Of a stretch of DNA of 64,000 nucleotides, positions 1 through 64,000 are shown piece after piece. The translations under genes were made by a program, and so were the position numbers. The DNA lies in assembly GCA_001643675.2 (NCBI GenBank), contig LSRY02000008.1, positions 1,674,001 to 1,738,000 on the forward strand. Reading direction: 5' to 3'. A model generated the notes under the pieces. That model saw only the letters and a list, made by a program, of their open reading frames with translations. It was not told the origin of the DNA and did not search any database. Numbering within the stretch: position 1 is the first letter of the stretch; each line of letters opens with the position of its first letter. The DNA comes from Monocercomonoides exilis PA203 (Eukaryota; Protista; Preaxostyla).

Positions 1-3
1 CCA

Positions 4-459
4 TTGTTCTCTGAGCCGGATCCATCTTCTCCTTCTCCTTCTTCTTCTTCTTCATTGCCGTCATCTGCACTGTATCTGACAGCCACAGCATCAGGAGAGA
101 GCGTGCTGGCGAATGTGAAGGTGACGAATGTGAAGTTGACTGAAGGAGATGGGGTGGTTGTGGCAAAGAGTGTGAAGGCTGGAGAGACATTTGGGATGAT
201 GAGCACGAGAACAGAAGGGGGGCAGAGTGGTTGTATGTTTGGGAAGGGCGATTCTGAGATGAATTTTTGGTCACATGCGAATTTGGAGGGAGGAATAAAA
301 AATCATAGGTGCGTTGTGAATTTGTTTCTGTTTTGCTGCAACTCGTGCAACCCACATAAAATAAGCATCATAACTGCTGCAAAACTCGAAATCTCCTGTT
401 TTATCAAGGAGCAGAAAATCGGGTTTATTTGTGAAAAGGAAAGGAAGCAAGGTGAGTAA
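4..459 (+). CDS. 3' end of a beta-helix family gene, mirror copy of 3821..6283; 5' part lies outside the window
   Basis: Identical to the C-terminus of the 820-aa ORF except CVVNL versus CVAIL. Confidence 0.75.
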   Translation: MFSEPDPSSPSPSSSSSLPSSALYLTATASGESVLANVKVTNVKLTEGDGVVVAKSVKAGETFGMMSTRTEGGQSGCMFGKGDSEMNFWSHANLEGGIKNHRCVVNLFLFCCNSCNPHKISIITAAKLEISCFIKEQKIGFICEKERKQGE

Positions 460-674
460 TTTGATGGAACATGAACGATTTATTTTTTCTTTGAAAAAAA
501 GAGTATTCGAATTATTTTTCCATTTTCGATGTTTTGCAGAAACAAAAAGTGGACAAGTTTCTTTATTGAATCCTTCTTTTTTTCTATGAAACAATTCATA
601 TGATTTTTATTTTTTCATTCATTGGCCAACTGCTTTTGAATGATTTTTTAGACTACAATAGTTATTAAAAATAT

Positions 675-937
675 ATATGGGTGATTATTTTTGAAATCAT
701 ATTTTTTCTTACAAAAATTTCGGTGCAAAAATTTTTCTTGAAAATCAATAAAAAAAATTGAAAAGTGAAAAGGCTTATTGAATGCATTTTTATCTTTGAT
801 TCGGATCAACCATTTGTTTTGAAAAACAATTATCATGCTTTTTCTCTTTTGAATTTAAATTTCTTTCGAAAAACTAACAATCTTTGAAAAATTAACACCC
901 CGAAAAAAGATATGATTTCAAAAATAACCACCCATAT
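675..937. repeat. About 260-bp unit bounded by an inverted pair of the ATGATTTCAAAAATAATCACCCA motif; possible MITE; mirrored at 3343..3605
   Basis: atatgggtgattatttttgaaatcatat (675-702) versus atatgatttcaaaaataaccacccatat (910-937), 1 mismatch. Can be read as TA|TGGG...CCCA|TA. Confidence 0.55.
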
Positions 938-3820
938 CGATCTTTTCTTTTTCATGCTTTTTTTTTTTCAAATGTGATTTTCACAACAACATTTTTTTAT
1001 TACAAAATGAAAAAATCAAACAGTTCCCTTGTTTGAAAAGAAATATGAAATTTCGGAACAAACTGTTGAAGAACTTCAAAAATGATTTGTTGATGAACAA
1101 ACAAACAAATGGATAAATGAATGGATGAAAAACATCAAACAATAGTATTTTCACAACAACTGATGAATGGAAAAAAAAAAAATTATTCGATTTTTTTTTG
1201 TATTTTTGTCAAATAATATCAAACTCTTCTGATTTGTCAATCATTCATTTTCATTTTGACAGGGGAAAATAAAAATGAAAACAATTATTCATTGAGAAAT
1301 CAGAGGAATTAGAAAATGGGTTCAATCTTAATTATTTAATGAAATATTTATCAAAATGAAAAATTAAAATTAAAAAATAGATCTCTTTTATAATGAAAAT
1401 AATTTTTCTTCGTTAATGGTTTATTTTTTTGTCTTTATTTTCCAATTTCAACCAAAAGGCACTCAATGGCTTTCAAAGTTATGATTTCAAAATTAATCAC
1501 TCATATTGATTTTTTCGAATTGAATGTTTGTTTTTTATTTATTTTGTTTTCTTCTTTTTTTTTATCAAAACAAATAATTCTTTCACAAAACGATGAAAAA
1601 GAAGTTTTTGAAATGCATCAACACTGATTTATTTGTTCCTTTTTTATTTTTGTTTTCCAGTCACACTTTTAACAGTTTATTTTGATGAGGGTGATTGCTT
1701 ATCTTATCCCACAAGTTTTCTGTCAAAAACGTCGATTTGAAATTGAGATTGGGACACTTGGAAATGGACACTTGAAATTGATAACTACATAGTGACAGTT
1801 CATTATTTGACTTTTTTTGTCTCAAATATAAGGTTTGTTTGGTTATTGAAAATCCTATTACACTTCAACTGAATATTCACAAGTCAATCTCGAAAAGCTG
1901 TATGATCATCCATTCTCCAATTTATTTTCTGATCTCATAACTCATTTTCCATATTCATCTCGATTATTTCTTTTCATTTGATTCAATGATTATGGAATTG
2001 ATTTATTGTCTCAATTATATCATTATTCTTTATGAAAAGTTGCAAAAGCAATATTTTAATGTTTATTTGAATATTTCTAATTTTTTGATGATTATCATAT
2101 TTCAACATTTAATTAAATCGAAAATAAAAAGTTTAAAAATACATTAAATATTCCATTGAAATCAACATGAGGTGTTTTATGAGTTTGATCAAAAATTTTT
2201 GAAATAATACAAATATCCTTTTCATTAATGACATTTGCTACATTTCAAAAATGAATTATTATTTAATGAGATAGAAAACCTAATCCACATTTATTTAACC
2301 AAATGAAAAGAAATAATCGAGATGAATATGGAAAATGAGTTATGAGATCAGAAAATAAATTGGAGAATGGATGATCATACAGCTTTTCGAGATTGACTTG
2401 TGAATATTCAGTTGAAGTGAAATAGGATTTTCAATAACCAAACAAACCTTATATTTGAGACAAAAAAAGTCAAATAATGAACTGTCACTATGTAGTTATC
2501 AATTTCAAGTGTCCATTTCCAAGTGTCCCAATCTCAATTTCAAATCGACGTTTTTGACAGAAAACTTGTGGGATAAGATAAGCAATCACCCTCATCAAAA
2601 TAAACTGTTAAAAGTGTGACTGGAAAACAAAAATAAAAAAGGAACAAATAAATCAGTGTTGATGCATTTCAAAAACTTCTTTTTCATCGTTTTGTGAAAG
2701 AATTATTTGTTTTGATAAAAAAAAAGAAGAAAACAAAATAAATAAAAAACAAACATTCAATTCGAAAAAATCAATATGAGTGATTAATTTTGAAATCATA
2801 ACTTTGAAAGCCATTGAGTGCCTTTTGGTTGAAATTGGAAAATAAAGACAAAAAAATAAACCATTAACGAAGAAAAATTATTTTCATTATAAAAGAGATC
2901 TATTTTTTAATTTTAATTTTTCATTTTGATAAATATTTCATTAAATAATTAAGATTGAACCCATTTTCTAATTCCTCTGATTTCTCAATGAATAATTGTT
3001 TTCATTTTTATTTTCCCCTGTCAAAATGAAAATGAATGATTGACAAATCAGAAGAGTTTGATATTATTTGACAAAAATACAAAAAAAAATCGAATAATTT
3101 TTTTTTTTTCCATTCATCAGTTGTTGTGAAAATACTATTGTTTGATGTTTTTCATCCATTCATTTATCCATTTGTTTGTTTGTTCATCAACAAATCATTT
3201 TTGAAGTTCTTCAACAGTTTGTTCCGAAATTTCATATTTCTTTTCAAACAAGGGAACTGTTTGATTTTTTCATTTTGTAATAAAAAAATGTTGTTGTGAA
3301 AATCACATTTGAAAAAAAAAAAGCATGAAAAAGAAAAGATCGATATGGGTGGTTATTTTTGAAATCATATCTTTTTTCGGGGTGTTAATTTTTCAAAGAT
3401 TGTTAGTTTTTCGAAAGAAATTTAAATTCAAAAGAGAAAAAGCATGATAATTGTTTTTCAAAACAAATGGTTGATCCGAATCAAAGATAAAAATGCATTC
3501 AATAAGCCTTTTCACTTTTCAATTTTTTTTATTGATTTTCAAGAAAAATTTTTGCACCGAAATTTTTGTAAGAAAAAATATGATTTCAAAAATAATCACC
3601 CATATATATTTTTAATAACTATTGTAGTCTAAAAAATCATTCAAAAGCAGTTGGCCAATGAATGAAAAAATAAAAATCATATGAATTGTTTCATAGAAAA
3701 AAAGAAGGATTCAATAAAGAAACTTGTCCACTTTTTGTTTCTGCAAAACATCGAAAATGGAAAAATAATTCGAATACTCTTTTTTTCAAAGAAAAAATAA
3801 ATCGTTCATGTTCCATCAAA

Positions 3821-6283
3821 TTACTCACCTTGCTTCCTTTCCTTTTCACAAATAAACCCGATTTTCTGCTCCTTGATAAAACAGGAGATTTCGAGTTTTG
3901 CAGCAGTTATGATGCTTATTTTATGTGGGTTGCACGAGTTGCAGCAAAACAGAAACAAAATCGCAACGCACCTATGATTTTTTATTCCTCCCTCCAAATT
4001 CGCATGTGACCAAAAATTCATCTCAGAATCGCCCTTCCCAAACATACAACCACTCTGCCCCCCTTCTGTTCTCGTGCTCATCATCCCAAATGTCTCTCCA
4101 GCCTTCACACTCTTTGCCACAACCACCCCATCTCCTTCAGTCAACTTCACATTCGTCACCTTCACATTCGCCAGCACGCTCTCTCCTGATGCTGTGGCTG
4201 TCAGATACAGTGCAGATGACGGCAATGAAGAAGAAGAAGAAGGAGAAGGAGAAGATGGATCCGGCTCAGAGAACAATGGCTTTGAGACATTCATATTTAT
4301 GATCTCCACACCAACCATCGACAGCTGCGACAGCGGCACCACAAACACTGACGAAGACATCACATAGTTTCCTGAAGAAATACTTGTGGTGATCACAACA
4401 TCCTCCAATGAGAGTGACCCACCTCCATCAGACACCACAACCACACTCGGCGAAGGATTTATATTTGAGTTACAATCAACCTTCATGTGCAATAAACCAA
4501 GGTGACCTGTCGTCACACTGAACAGCGTTCCTACAGATGAAAGTGCTCCTGTTCCAATCGAACTCTCCGTCCTCCCTTTCCCAATGACTGAAATCTTCTT
4601 TTCTCCAATCTCAACTGTTGTTGCCTCGCTTGTGTGATTCCCTTCCATCAGCGTGATTGTCAAACTAATCTGCACCTCACACATCTCAAACGCCTTCTTC
4701 ACCGTCAGACACGGATTTGTTTCATTTGCCCCACAAAGCGGAGATGTATCATTTCCATTCACCGAGACATAGATCGTCTTGTCCTTCAGCCAATCCTTCT
4801 TTTCTGTGTGCTGAAAATACCAGGTGTTTGCATTCGAGTAGTTGTATGCATAACACATTCTCTGTTCATTCGTGTTTGTTGTGTAACATTCCTTGAACGG
4901 ATTTCCTGTGCTCAAAAAAACATTGTAATAATCAACATATTCAACGTCATGCCCACGTGGATTGGCTGCATCCCTGCAGCTGCATTCATGGAAGAACAAA
5001 AAATAACAATAAATCACATCATTTTGTGATGCTTGTCTGTATGGATATAACTCCAATCCTCCTCCCTCTTGCCGTGCTGTACATGAAATAAATTGAATGC
5101 TCCTCATTTTGAATTGCGTGATTGGAATGTTCGCACAACACATGCCTCCACCTCCATTGTTTGTCAATGAGCATGAAGTGAAACTGCAGTCAAACACACA
5201 CGCACTCTCCCCTCCTCCATTTTCTGTTCCAATGCAATCAGTTCCTGAAACATTAAAATAATCAAGATAAAGTCCTCCTCCACATTCTCTTCCATTGCAA
5301 TTCTGGTATTCACATCCGCTGATCCGAACACACAATTTTATAGTATGAATGAACATCCCGCCACCACGATAACTTTGTGCAGTACAAGAATCAAAGGTGT
5401 TGTTCACAATCTCAACAGATTTGATATTGTAACAATAAATACCGCCTCCTGCATAATAAGCATAACAGTTGTTGAAAGAGCAATGAGAAACAGACACAGA
5501 GGCAGATGATTGACTGTACATGCAGATGGCCCCTCCGCTAGATATTCCATCAGCATACGAGTCAGCTTCTCCTGTTGTCTTCGATCCATTCCATTCGCAC
5601 CAAGTGAATGTATTAGCTCCATTGAATGTTTCATTTTGTCTTCCTGGAGCCAGCTTATTAGTTTTAGTTCCTTCGCAAACAACATTTCTTGTCCTGCAAC
5701 ACCCAACAAATGAGGTGTTTGAGGCAGTCAGAGAGGCATAGGGGTTGTTGAGGGAAGGAACAATTCCTCCATCATATGCATCATTAACAGATGAGAATGA
5801 ACAACTGCTCATCAAACATGAGGCTTGGGTTGACGTAGTTGTTGAAGGTGAACATGCATCATTTGCTGTCGAGATGTTGAAAAAAGTGAGTTTGGAGAGG
5901 GATATTAGGGGTATTGAAGGGGACGAAAGGAATGGGGCTGACGAGACACAAAAAGAAGAGAAATGTGATTCACTCACCGAAATACTCCCTTCAATGCCTT
6001 CTCCATCTCCATCTCCTTCTCTTCCTCTTCCTCTTTCTCCTCCTTCTCCTTCACTCGCTTTTTCTTCACCTCCACCCTTCTCCCCTCCATATCCCTTCCC
6101 TCCAAACAGCCTGCCTGAATAGATCTCTCCCCCTCTTCTCCACCCTTTCAATGTGATGTTCCTCAACACCCCAATGCTCCCACTCACATCAAATGCCCCT
6201 GCCTCAACATCCTTCCCCATCCCCACAGCACACCCCCTCACCACAACCACACTCCCCTTCCTTCCACACTCCCCCAACCACAA
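3821..6283 (-). CDS. Cys/Gly-rich right-handed beta-helix (pectin-lyase-like) putative surface protein, copy 1; probably 3'-truncated, true start uncertain
   Basis: 820-aa ORF with repeated (S/D/G)CxFxxC...GGG(I/L/M) coils. Departs from copy 4 abruptly after AKSVKAGETF. Confidence 0.8.
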   Translation of the reverse strand: MWLGECGRKGSVVVVRGCAVGMGKDVEAGAFDVSGSIGVLRNITLKGWRRGGEIYSGRLFGGKGYGGEKGGGEEKASEGEGGERGRGREGDGDGEGIEGSISVSESHFSSFCVSSAPFLSSPSIPLISLSKLTFFNISTANDACSPSTTTSTQASCLMSSCSFSSVNDAYDGGIVPSLNNPYASLTASNTSFVGCCRTRNVVCEGTKTNKLAPGRQNETFNGANTFTWCEWNGSKTTGEADSYADGISSGGAICMYSQSSASVSVSHCSFNNCYAYYAGGGIYCYNIKSVEIVNNTFDSCTAQSYRGGGMFIHTIKLCVRISGCEYQNCNGRECGGGLYLDYFNVSGTDCIGTENGGGESACVFDCSFTSCSLTNNGGGGMCCANIPITQFKMRSIQFISCTARQEGGGLELYPYRQASQNDVIYCYFLFFHECSCRDAANPRGHDVEYVDYYNVFLSTGNPFKECYTTNTNEQRMCYAYNYSNANTWYFQHTEKKDWLKDKTIYVSVNGNDTSPLCGANETNPCLTVKKAFEMCEVQISLTITLMEGNHTSEATTVEIGEKKISVIGKGRTESSIGTGALSSVGTLFSVTTGHLGLLHMKVDCNSNINPSPSVVVVSDGGGSLSLEDVVITTSISSGNYVMSSSVFVVPLSQLSMVGVEIINMNVSKPLFSEPDPSSPSPSSSSSLPSSALYLTATASGESVLANVKVTNVKLTEGDGVVVAKSVKAGETFGMMSTRTEGGQSGCMFGKGDSEMNFWSHANLEGGIKNHRCVAILFLFCCNSCNPHKISIITAAKLEISCFIKEQKIGFICEKERKQGE

Positions 6284-8639
6284 GCCCTGTCCTCTTCATC
6301 TCAACTGATGAGTTCCACAACTCTCTCATATAAATATTTCTTCCACTTCTTCTTTCTTTCTATTTTTCTTCAAGCATCCCTCAAAAAATCATATAATCCA
6401 TCTTCTCTTTCCCTTCTTTCTTCGCCTTCATTTAATATTCTCTTTTATTCTATTTTTTGTTAATATCTTCTTCGTCTTCATCATTCTTCTTCGTCTTCTC
6501 TAATTCTTGCCAGAATCTTTCTTTTATCAAATCATCAATTTTCCGCTCTCTCCTTTGCTTCTTCCCTTCCCCCTTTTCAAAATTTTGTATTAATCTTCAA
6601 GTCTTTCCTCTTCCATTCATTTCATATATTTTCTTTAATTAATTCCTCCATTCGCTCTCAATTCGTTTCAACTGTATTTTCAAAAAGTGCTCAAAAATCA
6701 TCTTTTCACGTTCCATGTTTATGAACTGGCGTTGGACATAACATCAAATTTTTAAACACGAACAATAAATTAATTGTCATTTGAAAAAATCAGATTTGAT
6801 TTAAAAAAGGAAGGAGTTGCACACATTGATAATAAACCTGAAAGATTGAAGCATCCTTTTCGATGCTCCAATTCAATATTCTTCTAATTCTTCTTTTGTC
6901 AAAAATTCGTCTTATCGAAATTGTTCGGAAAAACATTTGCCATCAAAAATCATAAGTGTTGATTAATAAGTCCAACAAGTTCAAAGTCCCTCATTCTCTT
7001 GCCTTAACCTTGCCTCAAATCGAAGCATATGCCAGAATTGAAAACCTGCTCTGTGGCTATATTTCTCCGTTCCATTCATTTCCAATCGGATATTCTATAA
7101 TGTTCGCCGTTCATGCTTTCTTTTTTCTTTTTTCTTTTTTCTTTTTTCTATTTTCTTTTTTTATTCTTTCCCACAAAAAGAATTTCAAATGCATTTGCCC
7201 ATCAAAACAAAACTCCCTCTTCCAACTCTTCCCCTTTCTCTTCCCCTTCTTCCTCCCCTTTCTCGTCAAATCCACTCATCTCAACGCCTCTTCCTATTCT
7301 TTTGGCACATCTCTCCCAAATCTTCGGTCTCTCACAACAACACTTTCTCATTCTCTCTCCTCCAACATTCTGCTCATCAAAAACTCCCACACCAGCTGGC
7401 ACTCCAGATGCGTCAGATTGTGGTGCAGCTCATTGTATTTCCTCCTCTCCCCAATCTCCTTCAAATGCAATTTCTTGTCCACTTTCCAATTTATTTATTT
7501 ATCTATTTATTTATTATTTTTTTTTTTTTTTGAGTTCATGCAAACTCAAAAATTTCATCAAACATCAAACACCCAAGCAATGCCACTCCATCTCACAAGC
7601 TCAAGTGGCTCAGAGCCAGGAGACCTTCTTCTTCTTCTTCTTCTTCTTCTTTCTGTACTTCTTCTGTTTCGTCTCTGCTTGAGGCAACTTCCTCAGCACA
7701 TCAAGCACAGATCGCTTTCATTTCTTTGTTTTTGCAGCCATCATTGTGCATCAGAAAGTTCTCACAAAGACATAACTTCAAATAATCATTCATTTCGTCT
7801 GCCTGCCTTCCTTTCTTCCTTTTTTCATAAATCAATTTCTCAAACCTTATGCTCGACAAATAGATCAGATTGAACTGAAAATGAATCATTTTTTTTTCTC
7901 AAGCCCAAACACCCAGTGTGCTTCTCCAACAACATCGTGTTGTCCAATGACATCTTATTATCCCCTGCCATTTTGCCCATTCCATTCAACAGTTCCTCTG
8001 AAAATGTTGAATTGCATCTCTCTTTCTCTCGTGTCTTCCCCCTTTTTCACCCTGTGTCTCAGCATCGCCCCAGTTTCCCGAATAATCCTGTCATATCAGC
8101 TGAAAAATCTGAAATGCTCATCAAATATCGAATTAGCCTCATGGCACACAAACTCAAATGCATCTGCCTCTTTTGCATCTCCATGCTTCCCCTGACTCAA
8201 CATCACCCGATAATTTAGCTTGCAGGGATTTTGTAGTGGCAACTGCCAAGCAGCAGACAGAAAGCAATTGCAAGCTCAAACAACAACAGTCATTCAAACT
8301 CCGTTGCCTCTGCTGCTCAACTTGCTTCAAAAACGAAAGGCCAACAAAAAAAGATAGAAAGTGGTTGTTAATGAATGGCAAAAATAAAATGAAATACACA
8401 CGCATTGCATTTTTCAAAAAAAAATATTTATTCGTGCACAATTCATTTTGAAAAAGATTTTCAATTATGTTTCAATTTCTATCTTTGATTTCAGATTTCA
8501 CAAAATACATCAATTATATGAAAATACTCGGATGTTCTGAAATCTGTCAGCCACAGACTTGGTTTCACTCCAAATTGCATCGGTTTCATGAAATATCAAT
8601 AATCATGGCTTGTTGATGTGCGGAGAGTCTGTTCATCGA

Positions 8640-9200
8640 AAAACTTGTTTTATCAATAGTTTTGAAGGATTTAAGTATGTATTATGATCAAGACATTCGG
8701 AATATTTTGATGGCCGCAACGCTGTTTGCAGTGTGAAGCGGGATGTGATGGGGTGAAATGTGTTTGTGTGTGTTTGTTGTTTTCATGGCTGTTGCTCATT
8801 CTGTGCATGCTTTTGGAAATGGCATCGTATTTTTATGTTGTTTGAAGAACAGCAGAACGAGGACATATTTGCGGGGGATGTGCTTTATTTCGATGGGCGC
8901 AGCAACTGACCAGGGACAACGAAAAGCAAGGAAAGCCGTGACGGGGTTGGAGGACGATCTATTTGATGCTTGTTGGTTTGAAAGGAGAAAAGATAAATCA
9001 TTATTATTATTTTGGCTGAGAGCTGAGATATCCCAAAGCAGGGTGCGAGGAAGCCATTTGCTCGCGATCTGTGGAGACATGAGCACCAATGATTTTCTGC
9101 AGTTCGTGGTGTTGACAGATGCCTCTGCTCACTGTCTGATTTTGTGGAAAATACAACAATATTCTATCAAAAACACAGATTATTATGTTTGTTCACAATG
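8640..9200 (+). pseudogene. Possible decayed DDE (IS4/IS1634-like) transposase remnant
   Basis: Hand translation across stops and frameshifts gives AGDVLYFDG (8871), TIYLMLVGLKGEKINHYYYFG (8954) and VRGVDRCLCS (about 9102). Order and spacing resemble DDE D1/D2 motifs. Not searched. Confidence 0.25.
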
Positions 9201-10705: not shown

Positions 10706-10965
10706 GGGTGATTATTGTTGAAATCATAAGTTTTTTCTCCATAGCGAAGACAGCTGGACAGTTTCAAATAAAAAAATGTCTTTATTAAAAAAGAAATGTT
10801 CAACACATTGATGTTTATTAATGAAAACAATATGAGAGACAAATGAAAGACACTGAATCGAAACGGTGATATCATCTCTTTTTTTATTCTTTTCTTTCAC
10901 AGAATGAAGAATTTGCAAACCGAAAGATTGTTCAATAAAAAAAATGATTTCAAAAAGAATCACCC
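10706..10965. repeat. Second ~260-bp unit bounded by an inverted pair of the TGATT-N8-AATCACCC motif
   Basis: gggtgattattgttgaaatcat at 10706 and atgatttcaaaaagaatcaccc ending 10965. Spacing matches 679..933. Confidence 0.5.
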
Positions 10966-13977: not shown

Positions 13978-14196
13978 TCACAGAAATATTCCATTCAATA
14001 ACTCCTTCTCTTCCTTTCCCCTCTTAGAAAAATATCGCAAAATAACCCAATATGGCTGTGCCCATTTTTCTATCTCTTCTGCCTCTTCTGAAATGAATCT
14101 TTTTCCCACATCTCTGTTTTTCCTTTTGTTTCCATCTTTCGCTCCTAACCTTATTCCATTCACATTCTTCGTTTGTGAATATTCACGCAAAAGTCC

Positions 14197-14321
14197 CTGT
14201 TATCAATTAAAAAACATATTTAATAATACAAAAAAATCAAAAAACATAATATATAAAAAATAAAAAAAATAAGAAATAAAAATCAAAATAACTTCAATAA
14301 TAAATATGAAAACCCCTGCAC
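14197..14321 (-). other. Probable spliceosomal intron upstream of copy 2
   Basis: Minus strand reads AAAATG|GTGCAG...T-rich...TTGATAACAG|GGACTTTTGCGTGAATATTC. Equivalent segments at 37711..37835, 46347..46414 and 49455..49561. Confidence 0.5.
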
Positions 14322-53097: not shown

Positions 53098-54807
53098 ATG
53101 AAGAAGGGGCAGAAAAGATGGAAAAAGGGATGCGACCATGTTGAGGTATTTTGTGAAATTTCACCAAGAAGCATTGAGAAGAGAAGGAGGCAAAGAAAGA
53201 AGTGCTTCAGTGAGCGAACTGCATTTCTCTTTTTTCTGTATTTTTCTCTTCCAACATATTTTTTTTTCAATATTTCAACAGCAAATGAAGCATGCTCACC
53301 TTCAACGACTACATCATCCCAAACCTCATATCTAATGAATAGTTGTTCATTTTCATCAGTTAGCGACACATATGATGGCGGGATTGTTCCTTCCCTCAAT
53401 AACCCCTATGCCTCTTTGACTGCCTCAAATACCTCATTCATAGAATGTTGCCGGACAAGAAATGTTGAATGCATTGGAACTTCAGGTAATAAGAAACAAC
53501 CAGGAAGACAGAATATAACAGACAATGGACCGAATACATTCACGTGGTGTGAGTGGAGTGGATCGAAGACGACTGGAAACAAAGATGATTATACTGATGA
53601 TGCTTCAAATGGTGGAGCAATTCGCATGTACAATCTGGGAAATGGAGAACTTTCTGTATCTCATTGCACGTTCAACGACTGTTATGCCTATTATAGAGGC
53701 GGTGGGATTATGTGCCTAACAATTAAGTCTATACAAATCGAAAATAATGTGTTTAATGCTTGTACTGCACAAAATCAGCATGGAGGAGGAATGTATGCGT
53801 ATGGAATTTCATCATGTGCCCGAATTAGCGGATGTGAATTCCAGAATTGTAAAGCAAATTATTACGGAGGAGGACTTCTTTTTGAATCTTTTCAGGTTTC
53901 AGGAACAGGATGCATTCCAACAGAAAATGGGGAAGGGGAGAGTGCGTGTGTATTTGACTGCAATTTCACTTCATGCTCACTTACGAATAGTTGCGGCGGA
54001 GGTATGTTTTGTAGAAGTGCACCTGAACAATTCAAAATGAGGAGCATTCAGTTCATTTCATGTTCAGCACGGCAAGAGGGAGGAGGATTATTTTTGCAGC
54101 CAAATCGAGCAACAGCACCAAATGATAAAATTTATTGTTTCTTCTTGTTTTTTCACGAATGCAGCTGCAGGGATGCAAATAATCCACGAGGACATGACGT
54201 TGAATATGTTGATTATTACAATCTGTATTTGGAATCAGGAAATCCATTTTATGAATGTTACACCACAAACACAAACGATAAGAGGATCTGCTTTGCATAC
54301 AATTATGCAAATGCAAGTGCCTGGACATATGATCAAACATCAAAAAAGGATTGGCTGAAGGATAAGACGATTTATGTTTCTGTGAGTGGGAATGATGAAT
54401 ATGAGTTGTGCGGGGCAAATGAATCAAATCCGTGTCTGACAGTGAAGAAGGCGTTTGAGATGTGTGAGATGCAGATTAGTTTGACAATAACGCTGATGAA
54501 AGGGAATCACACAAGCGAGGTGACAACAATTGAGGTTGGATCAAAGAAGATTTCAGTCATTGGGAAGGGAAGGGAAGCAAGTTCGATTGGAACAGGAACA
54601 CTTTCAGCAGCAGAAGCGCTGTTCAGTGTGACGAGTGGCCATTTGGGAACGAGCCATTTGAAGGTTGATTGCAACTCAACAGCAGATTTTTCTTCACCAA
54701 GCGTGGTAGTGGCATCTGATGGAGCAGGCAGAACACTTTCCCTGAAAGAATGTTTCAGGAAGAGAGTTATTTGTATGCAGAAAACGATAGCCGAAGGATG
54801 CAAATAG
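53098..54807 (+). CDS. Beta-helix family copy 10; 5' disrupted, 3'-truncated
   Basis: 569-aa ORF. The SASVSELHFS motif is in another frame (53138..53335). Family similarity ends at SDGAGRTLSLKE. Confidence 0.75.
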   Translation: MKKGQKRWKKGCDHVEVFCEISPRSIEKRRRQRKKCFSERTAFLFFLYFSLPTYFFFNISTANEACSPSTTTSSQTSYLMNSCSFSSVSDTYDGGIVPSLNNPYASLTASNTSFIECCRTRNVECIGTSGNKKQPGRQNITDNGPNTFTWCEWSGSKTTGNKDDYTDDASNGGAIRMYNLGNGELSVSHCTFNDCYAYYRGGGIMCLTIKSIQIENNVFNACTAQNQHGGGMYAYGISSCARISGCEFQNCKANYYGGGLLFESFQVSGTGCIPTENGEGESACVFDCNFTSCSLTNSCGGGMFCRSAPEQFKMRSIQFISCSARQEGGGLFLQPNRATAPNDKIYCFFLFFHECSCRDANNPRGHDVEYVDYYNLYLESGNPFYECYTTNTNDKRICFAYNYANASAWTYDQTSKKDWLKDKTIYVSVSGNDEYELCGANESNPCLTVKKAFEMCEMQISLTITLMKGNHTSEVTTIEVGSKKISVIGKGREASSIGTGTLSAAEALFSVTSGHLGTSHLKVDCNSTADFSSPSVVVASDGAGRTLSLKECFRKRVICMQKTIAEGCK

Positions 54808-57350
54808 ACATGGCTTGCCATGGCAGTGATATTTTCATCGTGCCCTGAATCAGTTCTTGTGTGTGCATTATTTCTTTCAAAAATTGTTCGAAGATATGAT
54901 GCATCAGTTGATATGTGTTTCTTCTTTTTTTCTTTTCTTTTGGAGGGAGGGGAATAAAAATAAAATAAAATATTAAAAACAAAAAAAATCTAAGCTTATT
55001 GATGAATTATTTATTTTTAAAGAGGAACTGAAAAAGAAAAAAATAAAAACAGTTGTTGTTTGATCTTTCTCTGAAACATTTAACTCATCAATCCCTTTTT
55101 GTCAATGATAATATTTTTATTTTTTGATTTTTATTTTTTGATTTTTGCAGAGGCTTGGAGATGCCTGAGATCCAAAAAATAATATTTTTATAATATTGTT
55201 ATTTTTGAATTTTGTGTTTGTTTTGTGAAACATTTTATGAGCATTATGTTTTGGAAGTTTGTTTTTGTTTACAGATGTGTGATCATTGGCTGAGAGTTTT
55301 TTCAGAGAAAGTTATTTCTGATTTTTAAAATTCTTTTGAGGTTGATCCGTCACGGGCATTTGCTTGTTTTCTATAACACGCACACAACACACTCAAGCAA
55401 ATAGAAATCAAAAAATACAGGCATTTAATAAAATGCTCATGTTTTGTGTTTTTTCTTTCCATGTTTTTTTTTAACAAAAATCTTTAATTTTTCAATAAAT
55501 AGTGTTTTTTTCTGTGCAACTTTGTTTTATAGAAAAATTAAAAATTTTTGGAGGAAAACAAGGAATTGCAATTATTTTTCGTTTTTCAGATGAAAGAGAA
55601 GAAAAGAGAAGATGAAAGTGGTTTGTTTCTTTTTTTCCCCCAACAATGAAATGTTTGTTCGAGAGATATGTGAAAAAAAGAAAATAAATATAATCAATGA
55701 TATTGGTCAGATTGAATTTGTTTTTATATTCAATGGAGTATGAACCACTCAGATTTATTCTTTTCTGTTGAATCCCTATGATATGATAAAGCAATGAAAA
55801 TATTGATTTCAAAAAGAATCACCCATCCATTTCCTTGAGATAACAAGGATCAGATATTGAAATGGAACTCTTCTTTTGATCAAATATCATTCACCAAAAT
55901 TATTCTTGAACAACCTTTTTGAAATAGATTGAATGAGAACATGATTACAAAAATCAACCATTTGTTCCATTTTGTTTCCAATTTGTCAATAATTCCGTTT
56001 TCAATTACCAAAGTGATTTGGGAACATTTCCAATTTTTTGTGAGAAAAAATACCAATCTTTCTTTTTTGATAAGTGATATTATTTGCAAAAACATTCATG
56101 TTAATTTATTTGAATTTAATTGGCTTTTTTGACAATTTTTTATTGATATGTTTCTTTGGTAATTGAAAACGGAATTATTGACAAATTGGAAACAAATTGG
56201 AACAAATGGTTGATTTTTGTAATCATGTTCTCATTCAATCTATTTCAAAAAGGTTGTTCAAGAATAATTTTGGTGAATGATATTTGATCAAAAGAAGAGT
56301 TCCATTTCAATATCTGATCCTTGTTATCTCAAGGAAATGGATGGGTGATTCTTTTTGAAATCAATATTTTCATTGCTTTATCATATCATAGGGATTCAAC
56401 AGAAAAGAATAAATCTGAGTGGTTCATACTCCATTGAATATAAAAACAAATTCAATCTGACCAATATCATTGATTATATTTATTTTCTTTTTTTCACATA
56501 TCTCTCGAACAAACATTTCATTGTTGGGGGAAAAAAAGAAACAAACCACTTTCATCTTCTCTTTTCTTCTCTTTCAACTGAAAAATGAAAAAGCATCACA
56601 ATTCCTTGTTTTCCTCCAAAAATTTTTAATTTTTCTATAAAACAAAGTTGCACAGAAAAAAACACTATTTATTGAAAAATTAAAGATTTTTGTTAAAAAA
56701 AAACATGGAAAGAAAAAACACAAAACATGAGCATTTTATTAAATGCCTGTATTTTTTGATTTCTATTTGCTTGAGTGTGTTGTGTGCGTGTTATAGAAAA
56801 CAAGCAAATGCCCGTGACGGATCAACCTCAAAAGAATTTTAAAAATCAGAAATAACTTTCTCTGAAAAAACTCTCAGCCAATGATCACACATCTGTAAAC
56901 AAAAACAAACTTCCAAAACATAATGCTCATAAAATGTTTCACAAAACAAACACAAAATTCAAAAATAACAATATTATAAAAATATTATTTTTTGGATCTC
57001 AGGCATCTCCAAGCCTCTGCAAAAATCAAAAAATAAAAATCAAAAAATAAAAATATTATCATTGACAAAAAGGGATTGATGAGTTAAATGTTTCAGAGAA
57101 AGATCAAACAACAACTGTTTTTATTTTTTCTTTTCAGTTCCTCTTTAAAAATAAATAATTCATCAATAAGCTTAGATTTTTTTGTTTTTAATATTTTATT
57201 TTATTTTTATTCCCCTCCAAAAGAAAAGAAAAAAGAAGAAACACATATCAACTGATGCATCATATCTTCGAACAATTTTTGAAAGAAATAATGCACACAC
57301 AAGAACGATTCAGGGCACGATGAAAATATCACTGCCATGGCAAGCCATGT

Positions 57351-58935
57351 CTATTTGCATCCTTCGGCTATCGCGTTCTGCATACAAATAACTCTCTTCC
57401 TGAAACATTCTTTCAGGGAAAGTGTTCTGCCTGCTCCATCAGATGCCACTACCACGCTTGGTGAAGAAAAATCTGCTGTTGAGTTGCAATCAACCTTCAA
57501 ATGGCTCGTTCCCAAATGGCCACTCGTCACACTGAACAGCGCTTCTGCTGCTGAAAGTGTTCCTGTTCCAATCGCTTGCTTCCCTTCCCTTCCCAATGAC
57601 TGAAATCTTCTTTGATCCAACCTCAATTGTTGTCACCTCGCTTGTGTGATTCCCTTTCATCAGCGTTATTGTCAAACTAATCTGCATCTCACACATCTCA
57701 AACGCCTTCTTCACTGTCAGACACGGATTTGATTCATTTGCCCCGCACAACTCATATTCATCATTCCCACTCACAGAAACATAAATCGTCTTATCCTTCA
57801 GCCAATCCTTTTTGATGTTTGATCATATGTCCAGGCACTTGCATTTGCATAATTGTATGCAAAGCAGATCCTCTTATCGTTTGTGTTTGTGGTGTAACAT
57901 TCATAAAATGGATTTCCTGATTCCAAATACAGATTGTAATAATCAACATATTCAACGTCATGTCCTCGTGGATTATTTGCATCCCTGCAGCTGCATTCGT
58001 GAAAAACAAGAAGAAACAATAAATTTTATCATTTGGTGCTGTTGCTCGATTTGGCTGCAAAAATAATCCTCCTCCCTCTTGCCGTGCTGAACATGAAATG
58101 AACTGAATTCACCACTTCTACAAAACATACCTCCGCCGCAACTATTCGTAAGTGAGCATGAAGTGAAATTGCAGTCAAATACACACGCACTCTCCCCTTC
58201 CCCATTTTCTGTTGGAATGCATCCTGTTCCTGAAACCTGAAAAGATTCAAAAGAAGTCCTCCTCCGTAATAATTTGCTTTACAATTCTGGAATTCACATC
58301 CGCTAATTCGGGCACATGATGAAATTCCATACGCATACATTCCTCCTCCATGCTGATTTTGTGCAGTACAAGCATTAAACACATTATTTTCGATTTGTAT
58401 AGACTTAATTGTTAGGCACATAATCCCACCGCCTCTATAATAGGCATAACAGTCGTTGTGAGATACAGAAAGTTCTCCATTTCCCAGATTGTACATGCGA
58501 ATTGCTCCACCATTTGAAGCATCATCAGTATAATCATCTTTGTTTCCAGTCGTCTTCGATCCACTCACACCACGTGAATGTATTCGGTCCATTGTCTGTT
58601 ATATTCTGTCTTCCTGGTTGTTTCTTATTGCCTGAAGTTCCAATGCATTCAACATTTCTTGTCCGGCAACATTCTATGAATGAGGTATTTGAGGCAGTCA
58701 AAGAGGCATAGGGGAAATTGAATCATACCGCATATATGTGTCAACTAATTAGATATGAGGTTTGGGATGATGTAGTCGTTGAAGGTGAGCATGCTTCATT
58801 TGCTGTTGAAATATTGAAAAAAATATGTTGGAAGAAATACAGAAAAAAGAAATGCAGTTCGCTCACTGAAGCACTTCTTTCTTTGCCTCCTTCTCTTCTC
58901 AATGCTTCTTGGTGAAATTTCATGCACCTCAACAT
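57351..58935 (-). CDS. Mirror of copy 10, fragmented by probable sequencing deletions
   Basis: ORF fragments match 53098..54807; differences are mostly deletions. Confidence 0.6.
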
Positions 58936-59644
58936 GGTCGCATCATCTCTGCTTATCTTCTGCTTTTTTTGTCTTTCAAAAATCCATTTTCTTTCATCGC
59001 TTTAATTCAAGTAAAACAAGTACAAATAATACAAGAAAAATGATCGAAATAAAATCATTTATGTGAAAATCAGAAAAATAAGCATCAAGGCATAACCTGT
59101 GCAAGCAGAAACAAACAAAACACAAGAAACCTTTTTATTCGATTTTTTTCGCTGACTTTTTCCAACTCGTCGTTTCTTCTTCTTTTCTTTTCCTCCTCTT
59201 CCTCCTCCTCTAAATATCGTCCTTTCTGCTGGCACACCCGCTTGCCCCATCTCTGCTGCCGATCCCATTTCCATCCTTCGACCTCAAAAACCACCCCTTT
59301 AAAACCCTCAGTTCTGCTTCCACTCCTTGGAATCTAATGCATAGACTAGAAAAATGAAGAAGAGAAGAAAAAAGATTACGATGATAAAGAAGAAGAGTAG
59401 GAAAATGAAAAAGAGGAGGATGAAGGTTTATTTTTTTTTAAAATTATTGATGAAAAGTTGGTGATGATAAATGTACATTTGGCACAACCTACACAATTAT
59501 AGCCAACAAAGACTCAGCCTCTATCTTTCTGCTCCTCCTTCTTTCTGCTCATGGCCCAGTAAAAACCAATAAAAGCAGAAAATTGATTAGAAGCCAATTC
59601 TTTTGTTGTTATGAAGACAGCTAAAGTGACTGAGATACGCTTTT

Positions 59645-61928
59645 TCATAGGGCAACGATGAGAAGGAGGAAAATAAAAAAACGGATGATTAAAAACTGCT
59701 GAGCAGAGAATAAAAGCAAAACAGCTCTTGTTCCAATCGAACTTGCTTCCCTTCCCTTCCCAATGACTGAAATCTTCTTTGATCCAGCCTCAATTGTTGT
59801 CACCTCGCTTTTGTGATTCCCATCCAGCAGCGTGATTGCCAAGCAATCTGCACCTCACACATCTCTAGCTCATTCAAGTCATTTCCATTCACCGAAACAT
59901 AAATTGTCTTGTCCTTCAGCCAATCCTTTTGTTGATTGATCAAATGTCCAGGCACCTGCATTCATTATAGCACATTCTCTTCTCATCTGTGTTTGTGGTG
60001 TAGCATTCATAGAACGGATTTCCTGTGCTCAAAAACATCAACATACATCATATCATTACCATATGGAATATTGGCCAAACAGTTGCATTCATGGAAGAAG
60101 AGGGCAATAAATTGTTTCATTTTGTGCTGTTACACCAAAATTATTCAAAATCGAAAAACTTTCAACCAAAGTCGAAAAACTTTCAAACGAAATCGAAAAT
60201 TATTATTCAAAGTCGGAAAACTTTCATTCAAAAGTTTTCATTCGAAGTCGAAAAAGTTTCATTCAAAGTCGAAAATTATAATTCAAAGTCGAAAAAGTTG
60301 CAAACGAAATCGAAAAACTTTCAATCGAAATCGAAAAACTTTCAAACAAAGTCGAAAAACTTTCAAACAAAGTCGAAAGTTCGAAAAACTTTAAATTTCA
60401 AAAGATGACAAAAATTAATACAAGTCAAAAAACATTGGTACACATCAATCACATTTGTAATAAAAATGTTTTTATCTTTCCGGTGTTTTTCTTAGCTTTC
60501 TTAAGACCAATTACAAATTTAAAATTATGAGAGAAATTCTGACATATTTTTATCTCATTTCAGTTGAAAGCACTCTTCTTCACAGAAAATTACCTATTTA
60601 ATGAAGAATAAAGAACACATTATTGACTCTCTTATTTAAAGTTTTTCATCACAAACGACTCATTTCTTATTGAAGGATGTGTTCTGAGATGTTTGAGTTG
60701 ATTTTGAATTAATTTTGGTTCGCAATCTTTAAAATTTGCAGAAATCGACAACGCAAACATTGCTGATAATATATCCAAAAACAAAAGAATATTTTCATCT
60801 TTTGTGGAATACTTTTATTTTATTTATTTTTTGTGAAATTTTCGACTTTGTTTGAAAGTCTTTCGATTTCGATTGAAAGTTTTTCGATTTCGTTTGCAAC
60901 TTTTTCGACTTTGAATAATAATTTTCGACTTTGAATGAAACTTTTCGACTTCGAATGAAAACTTTCGACTTTGAATGAAAGTTTTCCAACTTTGAATAAT
61001 AATTTTCGATTTCATGAAAGTTTTTCGACTTTGGTTGAAAGTTTTCGATTTTGATTGAAAGTTTTCGACTTTGAATTATTTTGGTGTAGCTTGTTTGGAT
61101 CAAAATAAAATCCTCCTCCCTTGCCAACGCAGAACATGAAATAAACTGAATGCTCCTCATTTTGAATTGTGTGCCAGGAACATTATAGCAAAACATACCT
61201 CCTCCATAATTGTTTGTCAATGAGCATGAAGTGAAACTGCAGTCAAACACACACGCACTCCCTTCTCCATTTTCAGCTCCAATACAGTTTGCCTCTGAAA
61301 CCTGAAAATTATCCAAATAAAGTCCTCCTCCATGGCTATATGCTTTACAATTCTGGAATTCGCACCGCTGATCCGAACACATTTCAAAATCAAATAAATG
61401 AACCAATCAAATGTGTTGTTTTCAATCTCAATCGATTTGATATTGCCCTGGAGCATAGCAGCTGCTGAAAGTGCAATGAGAAACAGACACAGAGGCATTT
61501 GATTGACTGAACATGCAGATTGCCCCGCCACTCGATATTCCATCTGAAACAGAATCGCTTTCTCCTGTTGTCTTCGATCCATTCCATTCACACCAAGTGA
61601 ATGAGTTTGCTCCATTGGCTGTTGTGTTCTGTCTGTCCAAATCAACTTTCTGTCAGTTCACATTCAACATGTTCTGCAACACCCAACAAACGAGGTGTTT
61701 GAGGCTGTCAAAAGACTAAGGGGTTGTTGAGTGAAGGAACAATACCTCCATCATAAACGTCACAGACTGACGAGCGCTACTTAAAACATGTAGCATGAGG
61801 AGGTGGCGAGCATGCTTCATTTGCTGTTGAAATATTGAAAAATCAGTTGGAAGAGAGCAAATGGCATCGAGGGAGTTGAGAGGAATGGAGTTTGACTCAC
61901 TCACTGAAACGCTTCTTTTTTGCCTCAA
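59645..61928 (-). pseudogene. Mirror of copy 9, transposon-interrupted and error-rich
   Basis: Fragments match 49717..52244. Confidence 0.65.
60133..61086. mobile_element. Mirror copy of the foldback transposon
   Basis: ta|cacc at 60133 and ggtg|ta ending 61086, at the same insertion site as in copy 9. Confidence 0.85.
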
Positions 61929-64000
61929 GCCAAAAATCCTCCCATCCTTTTCATCTCTTCTGCCCCTTCTTCATCGCTCGGTATTCCTTTTCCATCTTTC
62001 GCTCCTAACCTTGTTCCATTCGCATCCATTCATTTTGAATATTCACGCAAAAGCTCCTGCTATCATTTAAAAAATATTTAATAAAACAAAAATTTAAAAA
62101 TATACAAAAATATAAAATTGTTAAAAAAAAATTCCAATAATAGAAAGCCCGTACCACTACCATCTTCCGCTTCTTCTTCTCAAATTTCTCAAATTTCTTC
62201 TTCTGTCATATCATCAATTCCTTGATCTCATTTTTCGCTTTCGTTAAGATTCATTATATATGTCTTCCAAAACCTTCAAATAAAAATATATCTTCTTCTC
62301 TTTTCCTTTCATTTATATTTGCGCCAGCTCACTCCACCAAACGCCTTCCAATTATTATCTCCAGATTTCTTTATATGCATCCAATATCCCCTCTTTCCAT
62401 ACTCCTTGTTCATTCGTTTTCGTTGAACATTCTAGTTTCATAAAAAATAATATATGAAAAATTATAATTAAAAATATCCAAACCTATATCTTTCACAATG
62501 ACCGCCTTTCGCTGGCTTTTCTTTCTTCTTCTTTTTAAAATATTAACAAAAGCTCAATCTTCTGTTCTGCTTCCTCTCAAATTACCTCCACAAATTCCAT
62601 TCTTTTAAAAAACTGGCAAAAGAAGAAGATTCAAATCTCTTCCATCCCTTCTCTTCTTCTTCTCCATTTCCCCAAAACAACAATAATACCACCACGCCAA
62701 ATATCACAATCCCTGTCTCCTCATCTCCCATGCCCTTCTTCCAACCAAAAAAAAAAAAAAACGTCTCTTTCCATTGCAAAATACTCTCTCATTGTCAGCC
62801 CTTCATCTTCCTCTGTCTCCACACCTCCAATGCAAAGTGTGATCCTTCTTCCTGTCTTTCTCCACCTCTGCCTCCAACACTTGCCCTGCAAATGAGAGGC
62901 GCGGCCAAACGGTTCACAAAATAAATAATATAAATTTGAAGAATATTTTTCTTCACTTTTTTTCTTCAATCCACTTTTCCTTCTTATCAAACATAAGCCC
63001 ACAAAATCTCTTCTCTTTGTTCCGCCTCATATGCCTCCCTCCTCTCTCTCCCTGCATTTGAAAAAAAAATATCCCTTTCCATATCTCTCCATCTCTTATC
63101 CTCCTCTCCAATAAATATATTCCATTCACTCCACCTTTCTTGTTTTCCTTATCCCACCTCCTCAACAACAAATTCCTTTTCTCAAATAATAAACACTGCC
63201 TCAACACCTTCCCAATGATAAAAATCGAAAAAAACCCTCAAAATCCCATCCAAATCCGCACATCCGTTTTGCATCTGAAATCTCAAAAACACACAAAAAC
63301 ATCCTTTTGTCAAAACCCTGTTTCCTCCAAGAACTCAACTCCTTCACCCCATACCATCCTTTTGTTATCGCATTGTCTTCATATGCCCATTCAGCCACGA
63401 CACATCGAGTTGTGCTCCTTTTCTTTGAGACTCTTATTCGTTATGGAAAATGATCAAGCAATATCAAATGCTCAGAAACTGCCAACGGAGTGAGACTCCG
63501 AAGCTAAAACAAAGGCAGATTGACCAAGTGAAATATTTCCAGCGAATGGGTTGAGTATTGCAAAAGAATATTTGTTTAATGGAAGATGAAATTGTTCATA
63601 TTGATTGCTGGATGGCTGTGTAACAACAATATTTTCGATGGAAATGAAGAATTTTTGATGTATGTAATTTTTATTGTTCTATTTGTTGTGAAGATATTTC
63701 CATCCGTATCCTCTCCAAAGTCGTGATTCAGACAAATTATTTAAAATGGACAATTTATTCTTTGCAGAGGAGAACAGCAATGAAGTGAGACAAACATTAT
63801 TTTACAAATATATTACTAGAGCCTGAATATTTTGTCATAAACTGGCAATTATTTTGGACTCAACATGCGCGATGGATAGAAATGCGACGAAAAATGAGTT
63901 TTGATGGAGCAGAAGTCAACGGGATTGGAAGACTTCCAAGGCAAAAATGGAAGAATGCTCAATATCTATGAAAAGGGAGAGTTTTTAAAAAGAGGAAGAG

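Follow-up and report, generated by a model that had tools for sequence, protein, structure and literature searches.

The genome of the gut protist Monocercomonoides exilis, which lacks a mitochondrion, contains a 64-kb stretch (LSRY02000008.1:1,674,001-1,738,000; hereafter the window, whose positions are used below) of which ~77% is covered by three palindromes combined. The window is part of a large array of shortened copies of a receptor head domain carried by a 1.96-Mb contig. The original prediction, made from the sequence alone, had placed palindrome centres at ~2140, 25954, and 56083 and had assigned the DNA to a protist; all three palindromes were found at these centres and the host is indeed a protist. 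Palindrome P1 (1-4279), which is truncated by the window start, comprises two arms (1-2013 and 2267-4279; 99-100% identical) and a 253-nt centre, and its right arm terminates within cassette A. The P1 centre is itself a decayed palindrome (86 of 126 positions identical, 68%; z=4.5 versus shuffles), and its decay beside arms of 99-100% identity is an indirect hint that the arms may have diverged less than expected for their age.

Palindrome P2 (12238-39837; centre 25954) has arms of ~13.7 kb each, in which the inner arms (15956-25918 and 25990-~35950) are enclosed by diverged outer arms (12238-15955 and ~35951-39837). The inner arms are distinguished by 2 substitutions over ~9.96 kb (99.98% identical) and ~7 one-base indels, every one of which lies in an A/T homopolymer. 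Outward from them, identity steps down to ~95%, then to 92-85%, and then to 67-74% (at cassettes B and B') until the palindrome ends at 12238 and 39837. This gradient likewise hints, indirectly, at arms more alike than their age predicts, and the combination of near-identical inner arms and diverged outer parts would fit arm-to-arm homogenisation or recent re-copying; the P2 data, from one strain, appear compatible with both arm-to-arm conversion and very recent duplication. The 71-nt P2 spacer (25919-25989) is not palindromic (z=1.1). This spacer and at least 35 nt of both arms are bridged by short-read DNA contigs from two runs, which share their source sample with the assembly and provide a read check of the P2 centre only; contig depth is 49 at the centre versus 126-195 in the P2 arms. 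Since its centre is bridged in this manner, P2 is not an assembly artefact.

Palindrome P3 (46613-64000; centre ~56083) runs past the window end; its arms measure 9.4 kb or more (46613-56013 and 56154-64000, the right arm continuing to 64807 outside the window) and are separated by a 140-nt spacer. In terms of substitutions, the arms are 92-99.8% identical; ~110 one-sided deletions of technical appearance are found in the right arm, and the error profile of this arm is that of raw or under-polished consensus. The seemingly decayed cassettes G' and F' in this arm are probably unpolished Nanopore consensus and, because this decay is most likely a polishing artefact, P3 provides no evidence for or against homogenisation. 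The spacers of P1, P2, and P3 are all AT-rich and non-adapter, the flanks differ between the two sides of P2 and likewise of P3, and no hairpin-forming element was evident at the P2 and P3 centres. Palindromes of at least 99% identity occur in two of three other cassette arrays versus none of the four full-length receptor loci examined.

Thirteen family copies were mapped (A, the A' fragment, B, C, D, D', C', B', E, F, G, G', and F'), all of them truncated. Cassette A (3821-6283, minus strand) has an 820-codon open reading frame (ORF) comprising an N-terminal-region relic, the head, and ~160 further residues; it is devoid of a signal peptide and of anything past residue ~845 of protein P0004, and matches the full-length gene in locus L002 at 82-90% identity. 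The A' fragment (67-249, plus strand) mirrors the 3' end of cassette A in the left arm of P1. Cassette B (12433-13977, minus strand) corresponds to the annotated model P0062 (504 aa), and its positional mirror B' (37993-39621, plus strand) to model P0032 (479 aa). Cassette C (20106-21471, plus strand) is the same as C' (30408-31799, minus strand; 432-codon ORF, 431-aa model) apart from one additional A in an A10 run at 21206, by which its frame is broken. The longest copy, D (21611-24213, minus strand), has an 819-codon ORF and extends to residue ~1040 of P0004, and its mirror D' (27693-30295, plus strand; 701-aa model) is arranged head-to-head with it across the P2 centre. Cassette E (44519-46135, minus strand) is an unannotated ORF of 536 codons. 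Cassette F (49800-52211, plus strand) has one stop and is split at 50690/51723 by a foldback-type transposon-like insert of ~1,025 bp (50698-51722), the terminal inverted repeats of which (233-270 nt) are made of 21-nt subrepeats; its mirror F' (59717-61884, minus strand) carries a mirror copy of the insert at ~60143-61076. Cassette G (53098-54807, plus strand) corresponds to model P0042 (490 aa) and is mirrored by G' (57408-58866, minus strand); the frames of both G' and F' are disrupted by many small deletions. The cores of A, B, D, D', C', B', E, and G are open, and seven of the eight distinct copies retain 430-820 open codons. Approximately 13 mostly truncated copies with open cores had been anticipated, and this description stands, except that the decay of G' and F' looks technical.

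The gene-model annotation of the cassettes is patchy, and no signal peptide was found in frame with any copy in the window. Translation from the first in-frame ATG of D (nt 24192; ORF 24213-21754) yields a protein without a signal peptide, and the DNA upstream of most copies is a decayed N-terminal coding relic containing stops. A mini-ORF resembling a signal peptide (47693-47871, minus strand) is located 1.7 kb upstream of E, has the 5' splice-site motif GTATGT at its end, and is mirrored at 63600-63780 (plus strand); this is the only such pair in the window.

Full-length relatives of the cassettes (e.g., MONOS_9600 and MONOS_9722) have the head at residues ~60-740, as located by profile search in proteins of 1.5-3.5 thousand residues. 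The giant proteins (2-3.5 thousand residues) have a signal peptide, a single membrane span, and a C-terminal match to PF07714 (kinase-like tail). The window copies share 51-64% protein identity over ~450-760 residues with P0121, P0125, and P0119, and the window DNA has no match past residue ~885 of P0121 (2892 residues) or past residue ~872 of P0125. The distal outer domain, the membrane span, and the PF07714 kinase-like tail are thus absent from all window copies, and neither a full-length gene nor an expression site was found in the 64-kb window. The AlphaFold model of the D core (pLDDT 71.6, pTM 0.73) was searched with VIA-align, and the top 50 matches were all parallel beta-helices (Z 17.8-12.9); Foldseek by itself gave no significant match to the head model, and a Pfam search of eight window copies at E<=0.01 detected no family (e.g., PF05048, PF13229, or PF02415), PF05048 being carried only by a distant Blattamonas relative. 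The head is accordingly modelled as a right-handed parallel beta-helix, in agreement with the fold that had been proposed; consistent with the surface domain proposed with it, the head forms the outer, N-terminal portion of receptor-like proteins anchored in the membrane.

Mismatch-free RNA contigs map to the 5' part of D/D' at 23914-24129 and, via the mirror copy, at 24102-24305, whereas RNA depth falls to ~1 at 24379-24575, and eleven bins from the interval 24576-27530 have none. D/D' is transcribed, and the idea of a silent archive does not apply to this pair. Among the copies, dN/dS is 0.24-0.34 at dS of 0.5-1.07, so that the cassettes do not evolve neutrally, as had been suspected; a ratio below 1 would be compatible with selection on the cassettes or with import by conversion. 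Nineteen of the 40 most variable columns fall in the 10% of columns around GGG turns, where dN/dS is 0.39 and not >1.

The copies are also mosaic, as originally suggested. The nearest neighbour changes along the gene, the PHI statistic is 0.352 versus 0.519±0.004 in permutations (p<0.001), and identical runs of 134 nt (E-G), 99 nt (D-B'), and 94 nt (B-C') are shared within the window; furthermore, D shares a 205-nt identical run with a cassette on contig LSRY02000071. The patches are 94-99% rather than 100% identical, which indicates that most are old. The non-coding flanks of B and B' are 83-92% alike whereas their cores are 67-74% identical (dS=0.86), from which it is evident at the sequence level that both copies were overwritten once P2 had formed, and that cassettes thus also serve as acceptors. 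Identical runs among cassettes reach 63-205 nt versus a longest run of 35 nt to three full-length heads, and comparison of the window with L001 and with L002 revealed no stretch within the head that reaches 92% identity over 60 nt or more; these comparisons cover a handful of full-length genes and therefore show exchange only inside the cassette pool. Of the predicted palindrome-based archive that reshuffles a variable domain, exchange among cassettes is borne out, whereas transfer into the three full-length heads and an expression site in the window are not. In the tree, cassettes are interspersed with full-length heads, most of which have longer terminal branches than the cassettes do, which suggests a cassette pool cohesive by itself; a full-length head that groups closely with the cassettes of another array in the protein tree has only 86.5-92.7% DNA identity to them.

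Taken together, we favour, with a probability of roughly 0.55, an array of cut-down receptor heads in nested palindromes, in which fold-back duplication and ectopic gene conversion generate a slowly reshuffled pool of readable heads. The nested architecture points to fold-back (hairpin-primed) inverted duplication following chromosome breaks as the most likely origin of the palindromes, and suggests that their inner parts may be held or re-made identical through inter-arm recombination. Because the heads are 70-80% identical, ectopic recombination occurs as well; patches of tens to ~200 nt have been copied from cassette to cassette, in the array and across contigs, so that every copy is mosaic. 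Either selection acting on the cassettes or recurrent import of selected sequence would keep the frames open. The probable role of such a pool would be that of an evolutionary reservoir of receptor-head diversity, not of a programmed switch system.

The leading rival, which we nevertheless regard as unlikely, is a neutral by-product: dead fragments would be multiplied by palindrome-prone repair and ectopic conversion, their frames open only by overwriting from functional genes or by youth. The missing signal peptide and anchor, the transposon in F, and the patchy annotation are as expected for such fragments. Against this explanation stand the 430-820 open codons in seven of eight distinct copies despite dS of 0.5-1.07, the lack of recent tracts from the sampled full-length genes through which overwriting could have occurred, and the short terminal branches and self-cohesion of the cassette pool. 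A more ambitious reading, which is tentative and also rather unlikely, regards the arrays as a selected, germline-type diversification device, in which heads would be kept open as donors for full-length receptor-kinase genes and palindromes would promote the breaks and strand invasion by which patches move. If true, M. exilis would possess an equivalent, in a protist, of the avian pseudo-V arrays, one that works across generations and not in somatic cells.

Quite doubtful is the proposal that the cassettes are working genes, which might, for example, encode head-only proteins that are soluble or secreted and act as decoys or lectin-like binders; some would have a signal-peptide exon upstream. 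The open frames with dN/dS of 0.24-0.34, the transcription of D/D', the gene models on several copies, and the candidate signal-peptide mini-ORF with its GTATGT end upstream of E would all be expected for working genes, but that mini-ORF pair is single in the window, the protein from the first in-frame ATG of D has no signal peptide, and a stop-bearing N-terminal relic occupies the upstream DNA of most copies.

Programmed variation, in which segments of dedicated donors are copied, within the life of a clone, into one expressed full-length receptor gene or a small number of them, as in Borrelia vls, trypanosome VSG, or chicken pseudo-V genes, is very unlikely here. What defines the Borrelia vls and Trypanosoma brucei VSG systems is an expression site together with segmental conversion that proceeds one way during infection. 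The M. exilis window resembles them in its mosaic genes and in its clustered array, in which the variable part of a surface protein is present as partial copies poor in promoters. Cassettes that are open though truncated at both ends and that lie in both orientations, as well as the clustering of variable residues around GGG turns, also speak for programmed variation. By contrast, the window has no full-length gene or expression site, one-way conversion was not seen in the comparison with three full-length heads, which hold no cassette-derived run >35 nt, the patches are mostly old, cassettes such as B/B' also act as acceptors, and at least one cassette pair (D/D') is transcribed, so that transcriptional silence fails there. 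M. exilis is a commensal that is grown in culture and, to our knowledge, antigenic variation is not known in it, which counts against programmed variation. The chicken pseudo-V arrays similarly consist of variable domains without the 5' leader and 3' downstream parts, in both orientations, with short conversion tracts, although they serve a single functional acceptor beside the array through somatic AID-driven conversion (PMC11427246; 10.64898/2026.09.05.749481), whereas the M. exilis window has no acceptor gene and no flow into the sampled full-length genes was found.

An assembly artefact, i.e., palindromes from fold-back chimeric Nanopore reads or Canu mis-joins, could be prompted by the Nanopore-based assembly with uncorrected reads retained (corMinCoverage 0; PMC8767320) and by the under-polished look of the P3 right arm, but is highly improbable given the P2 centre and its depth in short-read contigs, the AT-rich non-adapter spacers, the diverged outer arms of P2, the different flanks of P2 and P3, and similar palindromes on further contigs.

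Several known systems share parts of this organisation. The DGF-1 proteins of Trypanosoma cruzi contain beta-helix parts and have many partial copies; they are unrelated in sequence to the M. exilis proteins, the tail of which is kinase-like. As the available part of one source describes it, DGF-1 is a very large, repetitive surface-protein family with fragmented annotation, as is the M. exilis family, whereas the palindromic cassette layout of M. exilis is not apparent for DGF-1 in that part (10.64898/2026.07.27.741050). Primate sex-chromosome palindromes likewise have multi-kb gene-bearing arms of at least 99.9% identity, as in the P2 inner arms, around a short unique spacer, and their arms are kept alike through arm-to-arm gene conversion (PMC8327919; 10.1101/800185). 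P2 combines ~99.9% or more identity with a unique, non-palindromic 71-nt spacer; unlike in primates, conversion in M. exilis is putative (one strain), identity drops stepwise outwards, and the genes are receptor-family fragments for which copies beyond the palindrome are ectopic recombination partners as well. In Giardia lamblia, also a metamonad protist with an arrayed surface-protein family and a statistical signal of recombination between members, cysteine-rich vsp genes occur in linear arrays and in identical head-to-head or tail-to-tail pairs a few kb apart (PMC2996952). The Giardia genes are complete and anchored, with one per arm (PMC2996952), whereas the M. exilis arms extend over at least 10 kb, are nested, and carry several head-only copies each.

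The cassettes of the window are the outer heads of receptor-like proteins, i.e., N-terminal beta-helix domains cut from giant membrane proteins. The window occupies 1,674,001–1,738,000 of contig LSRY02000008.1 (1,962,414 bp), as exact look-ups showed. A protein search with the longest ORF returned more than 115 entries of Monocercomonoides exilis named "uncharacterized protein MONOS_...", and tblastn located 13 copies (A, an A′ fragment, B, C, D, D′, C′, B′, E, F, G, G′, and F′, primes denoting mirror copies); no Pfam family was assigned to eight cassette copies or to ten non-cassette ORFs of the window. A profile search without length limit retrieved M. exilis proteins of 1.5–3.5 thousand residues with the head domain at approximately residues 60–740, and the giant relatives have a signal peptide, cross the membrane once near the C-terminal fifth, and partially match PK_Tyr_Ser-Thr. 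The structure of the core, the central open part of each cassette, was modeled from a 99-row alignment with a pLDDT of 71.6 and a pTM of 0.73 (an earlier 10-row alignment gave a pLDDT of only 44); the model matches right-handed parallel beta-helices only, with Z of 17.8–12.9 in VIA-align, and a Foldseek search of it against the PDB gave no significant match. Because the model aligns solely to beta-helices and the relatives are membrane-spanning with a signal peptide, the original prediction of a beta-helix surface protein was right in substance.

The truncation of these heads is evident at both ends. No DNA of the window matches the full-length relative P0121 (2892 residues) past residue ~885, and most cassettes stop at approximately residues 676–736 of another full-length relative, P0004, A extending to ~845 and D to ~1040. 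Upstream of each core, the N-terminal region and Gly/Glu/Arg-rich linker of the full-length genes survive as decayed, purine-rich DNA with stops; part of this remnant is in frame in cassette A only, which also has no signal peptide, and a search for N-terminal exons upstream of the cassettes yielded just relics of 12–34 residues. These relics weigh against the explanation that the cassettes are working genes for the head alone, on whose side stands the transcription of D/D′: contigs of an RNA run from a different study lie without mismatch on the 5′ part of D/D′ and reach approximately 110 nt upstream of the first ATG. Since RNA depth in the neighboring bins is nearly nil (zero in eleven bins of 24576–27530 and approximately 1 at 24379–24575), DNA carry-over does not explain the signal, and D/D′ is transcribed. 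Furthermore, a signal-peptide-like mini-ORF, MKLFILIAGWLCNNNIFDGNEEFL, at 63590–63669 on the forward strand, with its mirror at 47693–47871 on the reverse strand, 1.7 kb upstream of E, terminates at a GTATGT 5′ splice-site motif and, judged from sequence, could be a leader exon making E a secreted head-only protein. The idea that a 37-nt/GTATGT motif generally precedes cassettes and points at them was rejected, because the window contains one such motif and its mirror.

The cassettes are mosaics, as had been proposed, and sequence is exchanged among them both within and between contigs. The nearest relative of each cassette switches every 60–300 nt, patches of 94–99% identity stand against a background of 70–80%, and the PHI statistic is 0.352, whereas 1000 permutations give 0.519 ± 0.004. 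Stretches in which the polymorphic sites are identical extend over 134 nt between E and G, 99 nt between D and B′, and 94 nt between B and C′, and when the cassettes of three further contigs were added, D and a cassette of LSRY02000071 were found to share a run of 205 nt. B and B′ occupy mirror sites of the second palindrome, and their non-coding flanks are 83–92% alike, yet their dS is 0.86 and each is locally nearest to other cassettes; hence at least one of them was overwritten after this palindrome had formed, and cassettes receive sequence as well as donate it.

This exchange is the part of the predicted archive that stands; the part in which the archive feeds expressed genes is not supported by the handful of full-length genes compared. 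The longest identical run between any cassette and the heads of three full-length receptor loci (L001, L003, and L004) is 35 nt, and within the head, comparison of the window with L001 and with a fourth locus, L002, gave no patch of 60 nt or longer at 92% identity or higher. Outside the head, matches of the window to L001/L002 comprise a 196-nt stretch at 92.9% (window 1–193), which lies past the head, and an 85-nt simple CTT repeat. The cassettes of L009, an array elsewhere in the genome, are the closest on a protein tree to a full-length head (MONOS_14295), and the DNA is only 86.5–92.7% identical; recent tracts common to cassettes and full-length genes were thus not found in those compared. 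A programmed system of the vls/VSG type is an unlikely rival explanation, and the array does not pass the tests by which such silent-cassette variation systems are defined, D/D′ being transcribed and the window holding no full-length gene. A quick tree intermingles the cassettes with full-length heads; well-supported branches force five or more label changes. The terminal branches of the cassettes are shorter than those of most full-length heads. This pattern fits a cohesive, internally exchanging pool of several origins.

Neutral debris, the explanation in which the cassettes are dead gene fragments, has the constraint on the cores against it. Among seven distinct intact cores, dN/dS is 0.24–0.34 at dS of 0.5–1.07; the cores have therefore not evolved neutrally. 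Variation is concentrated round the GGG turns, where 19 of the 40 most variable columns fall within 10% of columns; dN/dS is 0.39 there versus 0.24 elsewhere, a value that gives no evidence of positive selection on the loops round these turns.

All three palindromes that had been proposed are present in a self-comparison of the window DNA (P1, P2, and P3, centered at ~2140, 25954, and ~56083), and approximately 77% of the window is palindromic. The arms of P1 (1–2013 and 2267–4279) are 99–100% identical and give a lower size bound only, because the window start cuts P1; its 253-nt center is itself a decayed palindrome (86 of 126 positions identical, z = 4.5). P2 has a non-palindromic spacer of 71 nt (25919–25989), and its inner arms (15956–25918 and the mirror) differ by 2 substitutions and approximately 7 one-base indels, every one inside a run of A6–A12 or T6–T7 (21206, 16969, 17961, 17977, 24749, and 24766; A/T runs of 6–12 bases). 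Outward, identity steps down to ~95%, to 92–85%, and to 67–74% within cassettes B/B′, the homology ending at 12238 and 39837. The drop from 100% to ~95% falls at an AT-rich self-complementary mini-palindrome (15900–15960 and its mirror), where conversion tracts or re-copying may have ended, and inside the ~95% zone a (CTT)26/(GAA)n repeat (15414 and 36504–36582), present in the right arm and nearly missing from the left, forms a length difference. The spacer of P3 is at 56014–56153, and of its arms, the left spans at least 46613–56013 and the right at least 56154–64807, past the window end; a decayed palindrome in this spacer was rejected (z = −0.5). A search for a repeat common to the three centers, or to a center and the rest of the window, gave only 30–44-nt matches, and a hairpin transposon at the centers was rejected in view of the absence of a shared repeat and the non-palindromic spacers of P2 and P3.

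That the palindromes are an assembly artefact is a further, very unlikely explanation. Two DNA runs made from the sample that was assembled gave contigs across the P2 center (25884–26024 and 25885–26023), with the entire spacer and at least 35 nt of either arm, at a depth of 49 versus 126–195 in the arms; a de Bruijn graph yields this for a true palindrome, so that a Nanopore-only artefact is excluded for P2 and its center is real. Furthermore, palindromes of at least 99% identity are found in two of three other cassette arrays (with 10-kb flanks) versus none of four full-length receptor loci, although these numbers are small. L009 (contig LSRY02000045) contains a palindrome at 7935–18862, spanning 10.9 kb with arms of ~5.5 kb at 99.25% and family HSPs on either arm (10385–11848 and 16418–14956), and a second at 1–3810; a further array, L010 (LSRY02000071), has one at 1–2369, the array palindromes being 99.25–99.3% identical.

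Errors of consensus are a separate matter. The arms of P3 are 92–99.8% identical at aligned bases, and the right arm (56154–64000 and 807 nt beyond, L006:20667–21473) carries approximately 110 deletions of 1–48 nt versus 4 in the left. Microhomology at these deletions is not in excess (1.06 versus 0.96 ± 0.20), the small ones are mostly homopolymer-borne (31 of 56), density is alike in cassette DNA (33 in 2.9 kb) and elsewhere (74 in 5.6 kb), those in cassettes are not in-frame (7 of 33), and approximately half of the arm substitutions are no more than 5 columns away from a gap. The assembly was made by Canu on Nanopore reads and polished by Nanopolish and Pilon, and its authors state that multi-copy DNA was polished unevenly and less well (PMC8767320). 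Biological decay of the right arm was rejected on the one-sidedness of the deletions, the lack of microhomology excess, and the equal coding and non-coding density; together with the authors' account of uneven polishing (PMC8767320), the pattern favors a technical cause, and the arm is probably an under-polished Nanopore consensus. Consequently, G′ and F′ are not countable as pseudogenes as the sequence stands and could in fact be intact copies; equal care is called for with the "frameshift" of cassette C, whose difference from C′ is a single A at 21206 in an A10 run. The public annotation of the head family is likewise inconsistent: D (21754–22674) and the identical D′ (28182–30152) have models of 306 and 701 aa, the 536-codon ORF of E (44519–46129) has no model, and full-length receptors are broken into two or three adjacent models (L002:8564–17486 and L004:10001–19099). 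With ~110 probable consensus errors in one arm and differing models on identical copies, counting family members, calling pseudogenes, and testing for selection in M. exilis all require a re-polished sequence.

The nested palindromes that hold the truncated heads probably arose by fold-back inverted duplication, and their inner arms would have been maintained or re-copied through inter-arm recombination, for which the decayed P1 center and the outward gradient of P2 are indirect support; the probable role of the arrays is to hold head diversity in reserve over evolutionary time. The closest described case, also in a metamonad, is that of Giardia, in which 14 identical vsp pairs lie head-to-head or tail-to-tail, 2–4 kb apart, along with arrays and recombination (PMC2996952). 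By contrast, the arms in M. exilis are 10-kb or larger, nested, and hold several copies apiece, and each unit is a fragment of a receptor-kinase-like gene. The arrays are somewhat similar in working to avian pseudo-V arrays, and the palindromes to those of sex chromosomes. M. exilis has been studied chiefly for mitochondrion loss. Should the full-length receptors indeed draw on the pool, a protist that is not a parasite would provide a new instance in which a recognition domain is diversified from templates; it would further offer a tractable system for studying fold-back duplication in nature and the maintenance of palindromes. In the assembly, ~35% is "unclassified repeat", overlapping the kinase families, of which the tyrosine kinases are very large; the authors' account contains neither the palindromes nor the head family (PMC8767320). 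Part of this fraction is nested palindromes full of readable, sequence-exchanging fragments of receptor heads.

Self-complementary elements occur at a smaller scale as well. At L001:7332–7673, upstream of MONOS_9600, a full-length receptor, a 344-nt element (89.5%) adjoins a DDE_Tnp_IS1595-type gene. Cassette F is interrupted by a foldback-type mobile element of ~1,025 bp (50698–51722; mirror ~60143–61076), whose TIRs of 233–270 nt are made of 21-nt subrepeats (TCAAAGTCGAAAAACTTTCAA); as both arms of P3 contain the element, its insertion predates the duplication or it was copied along with it.
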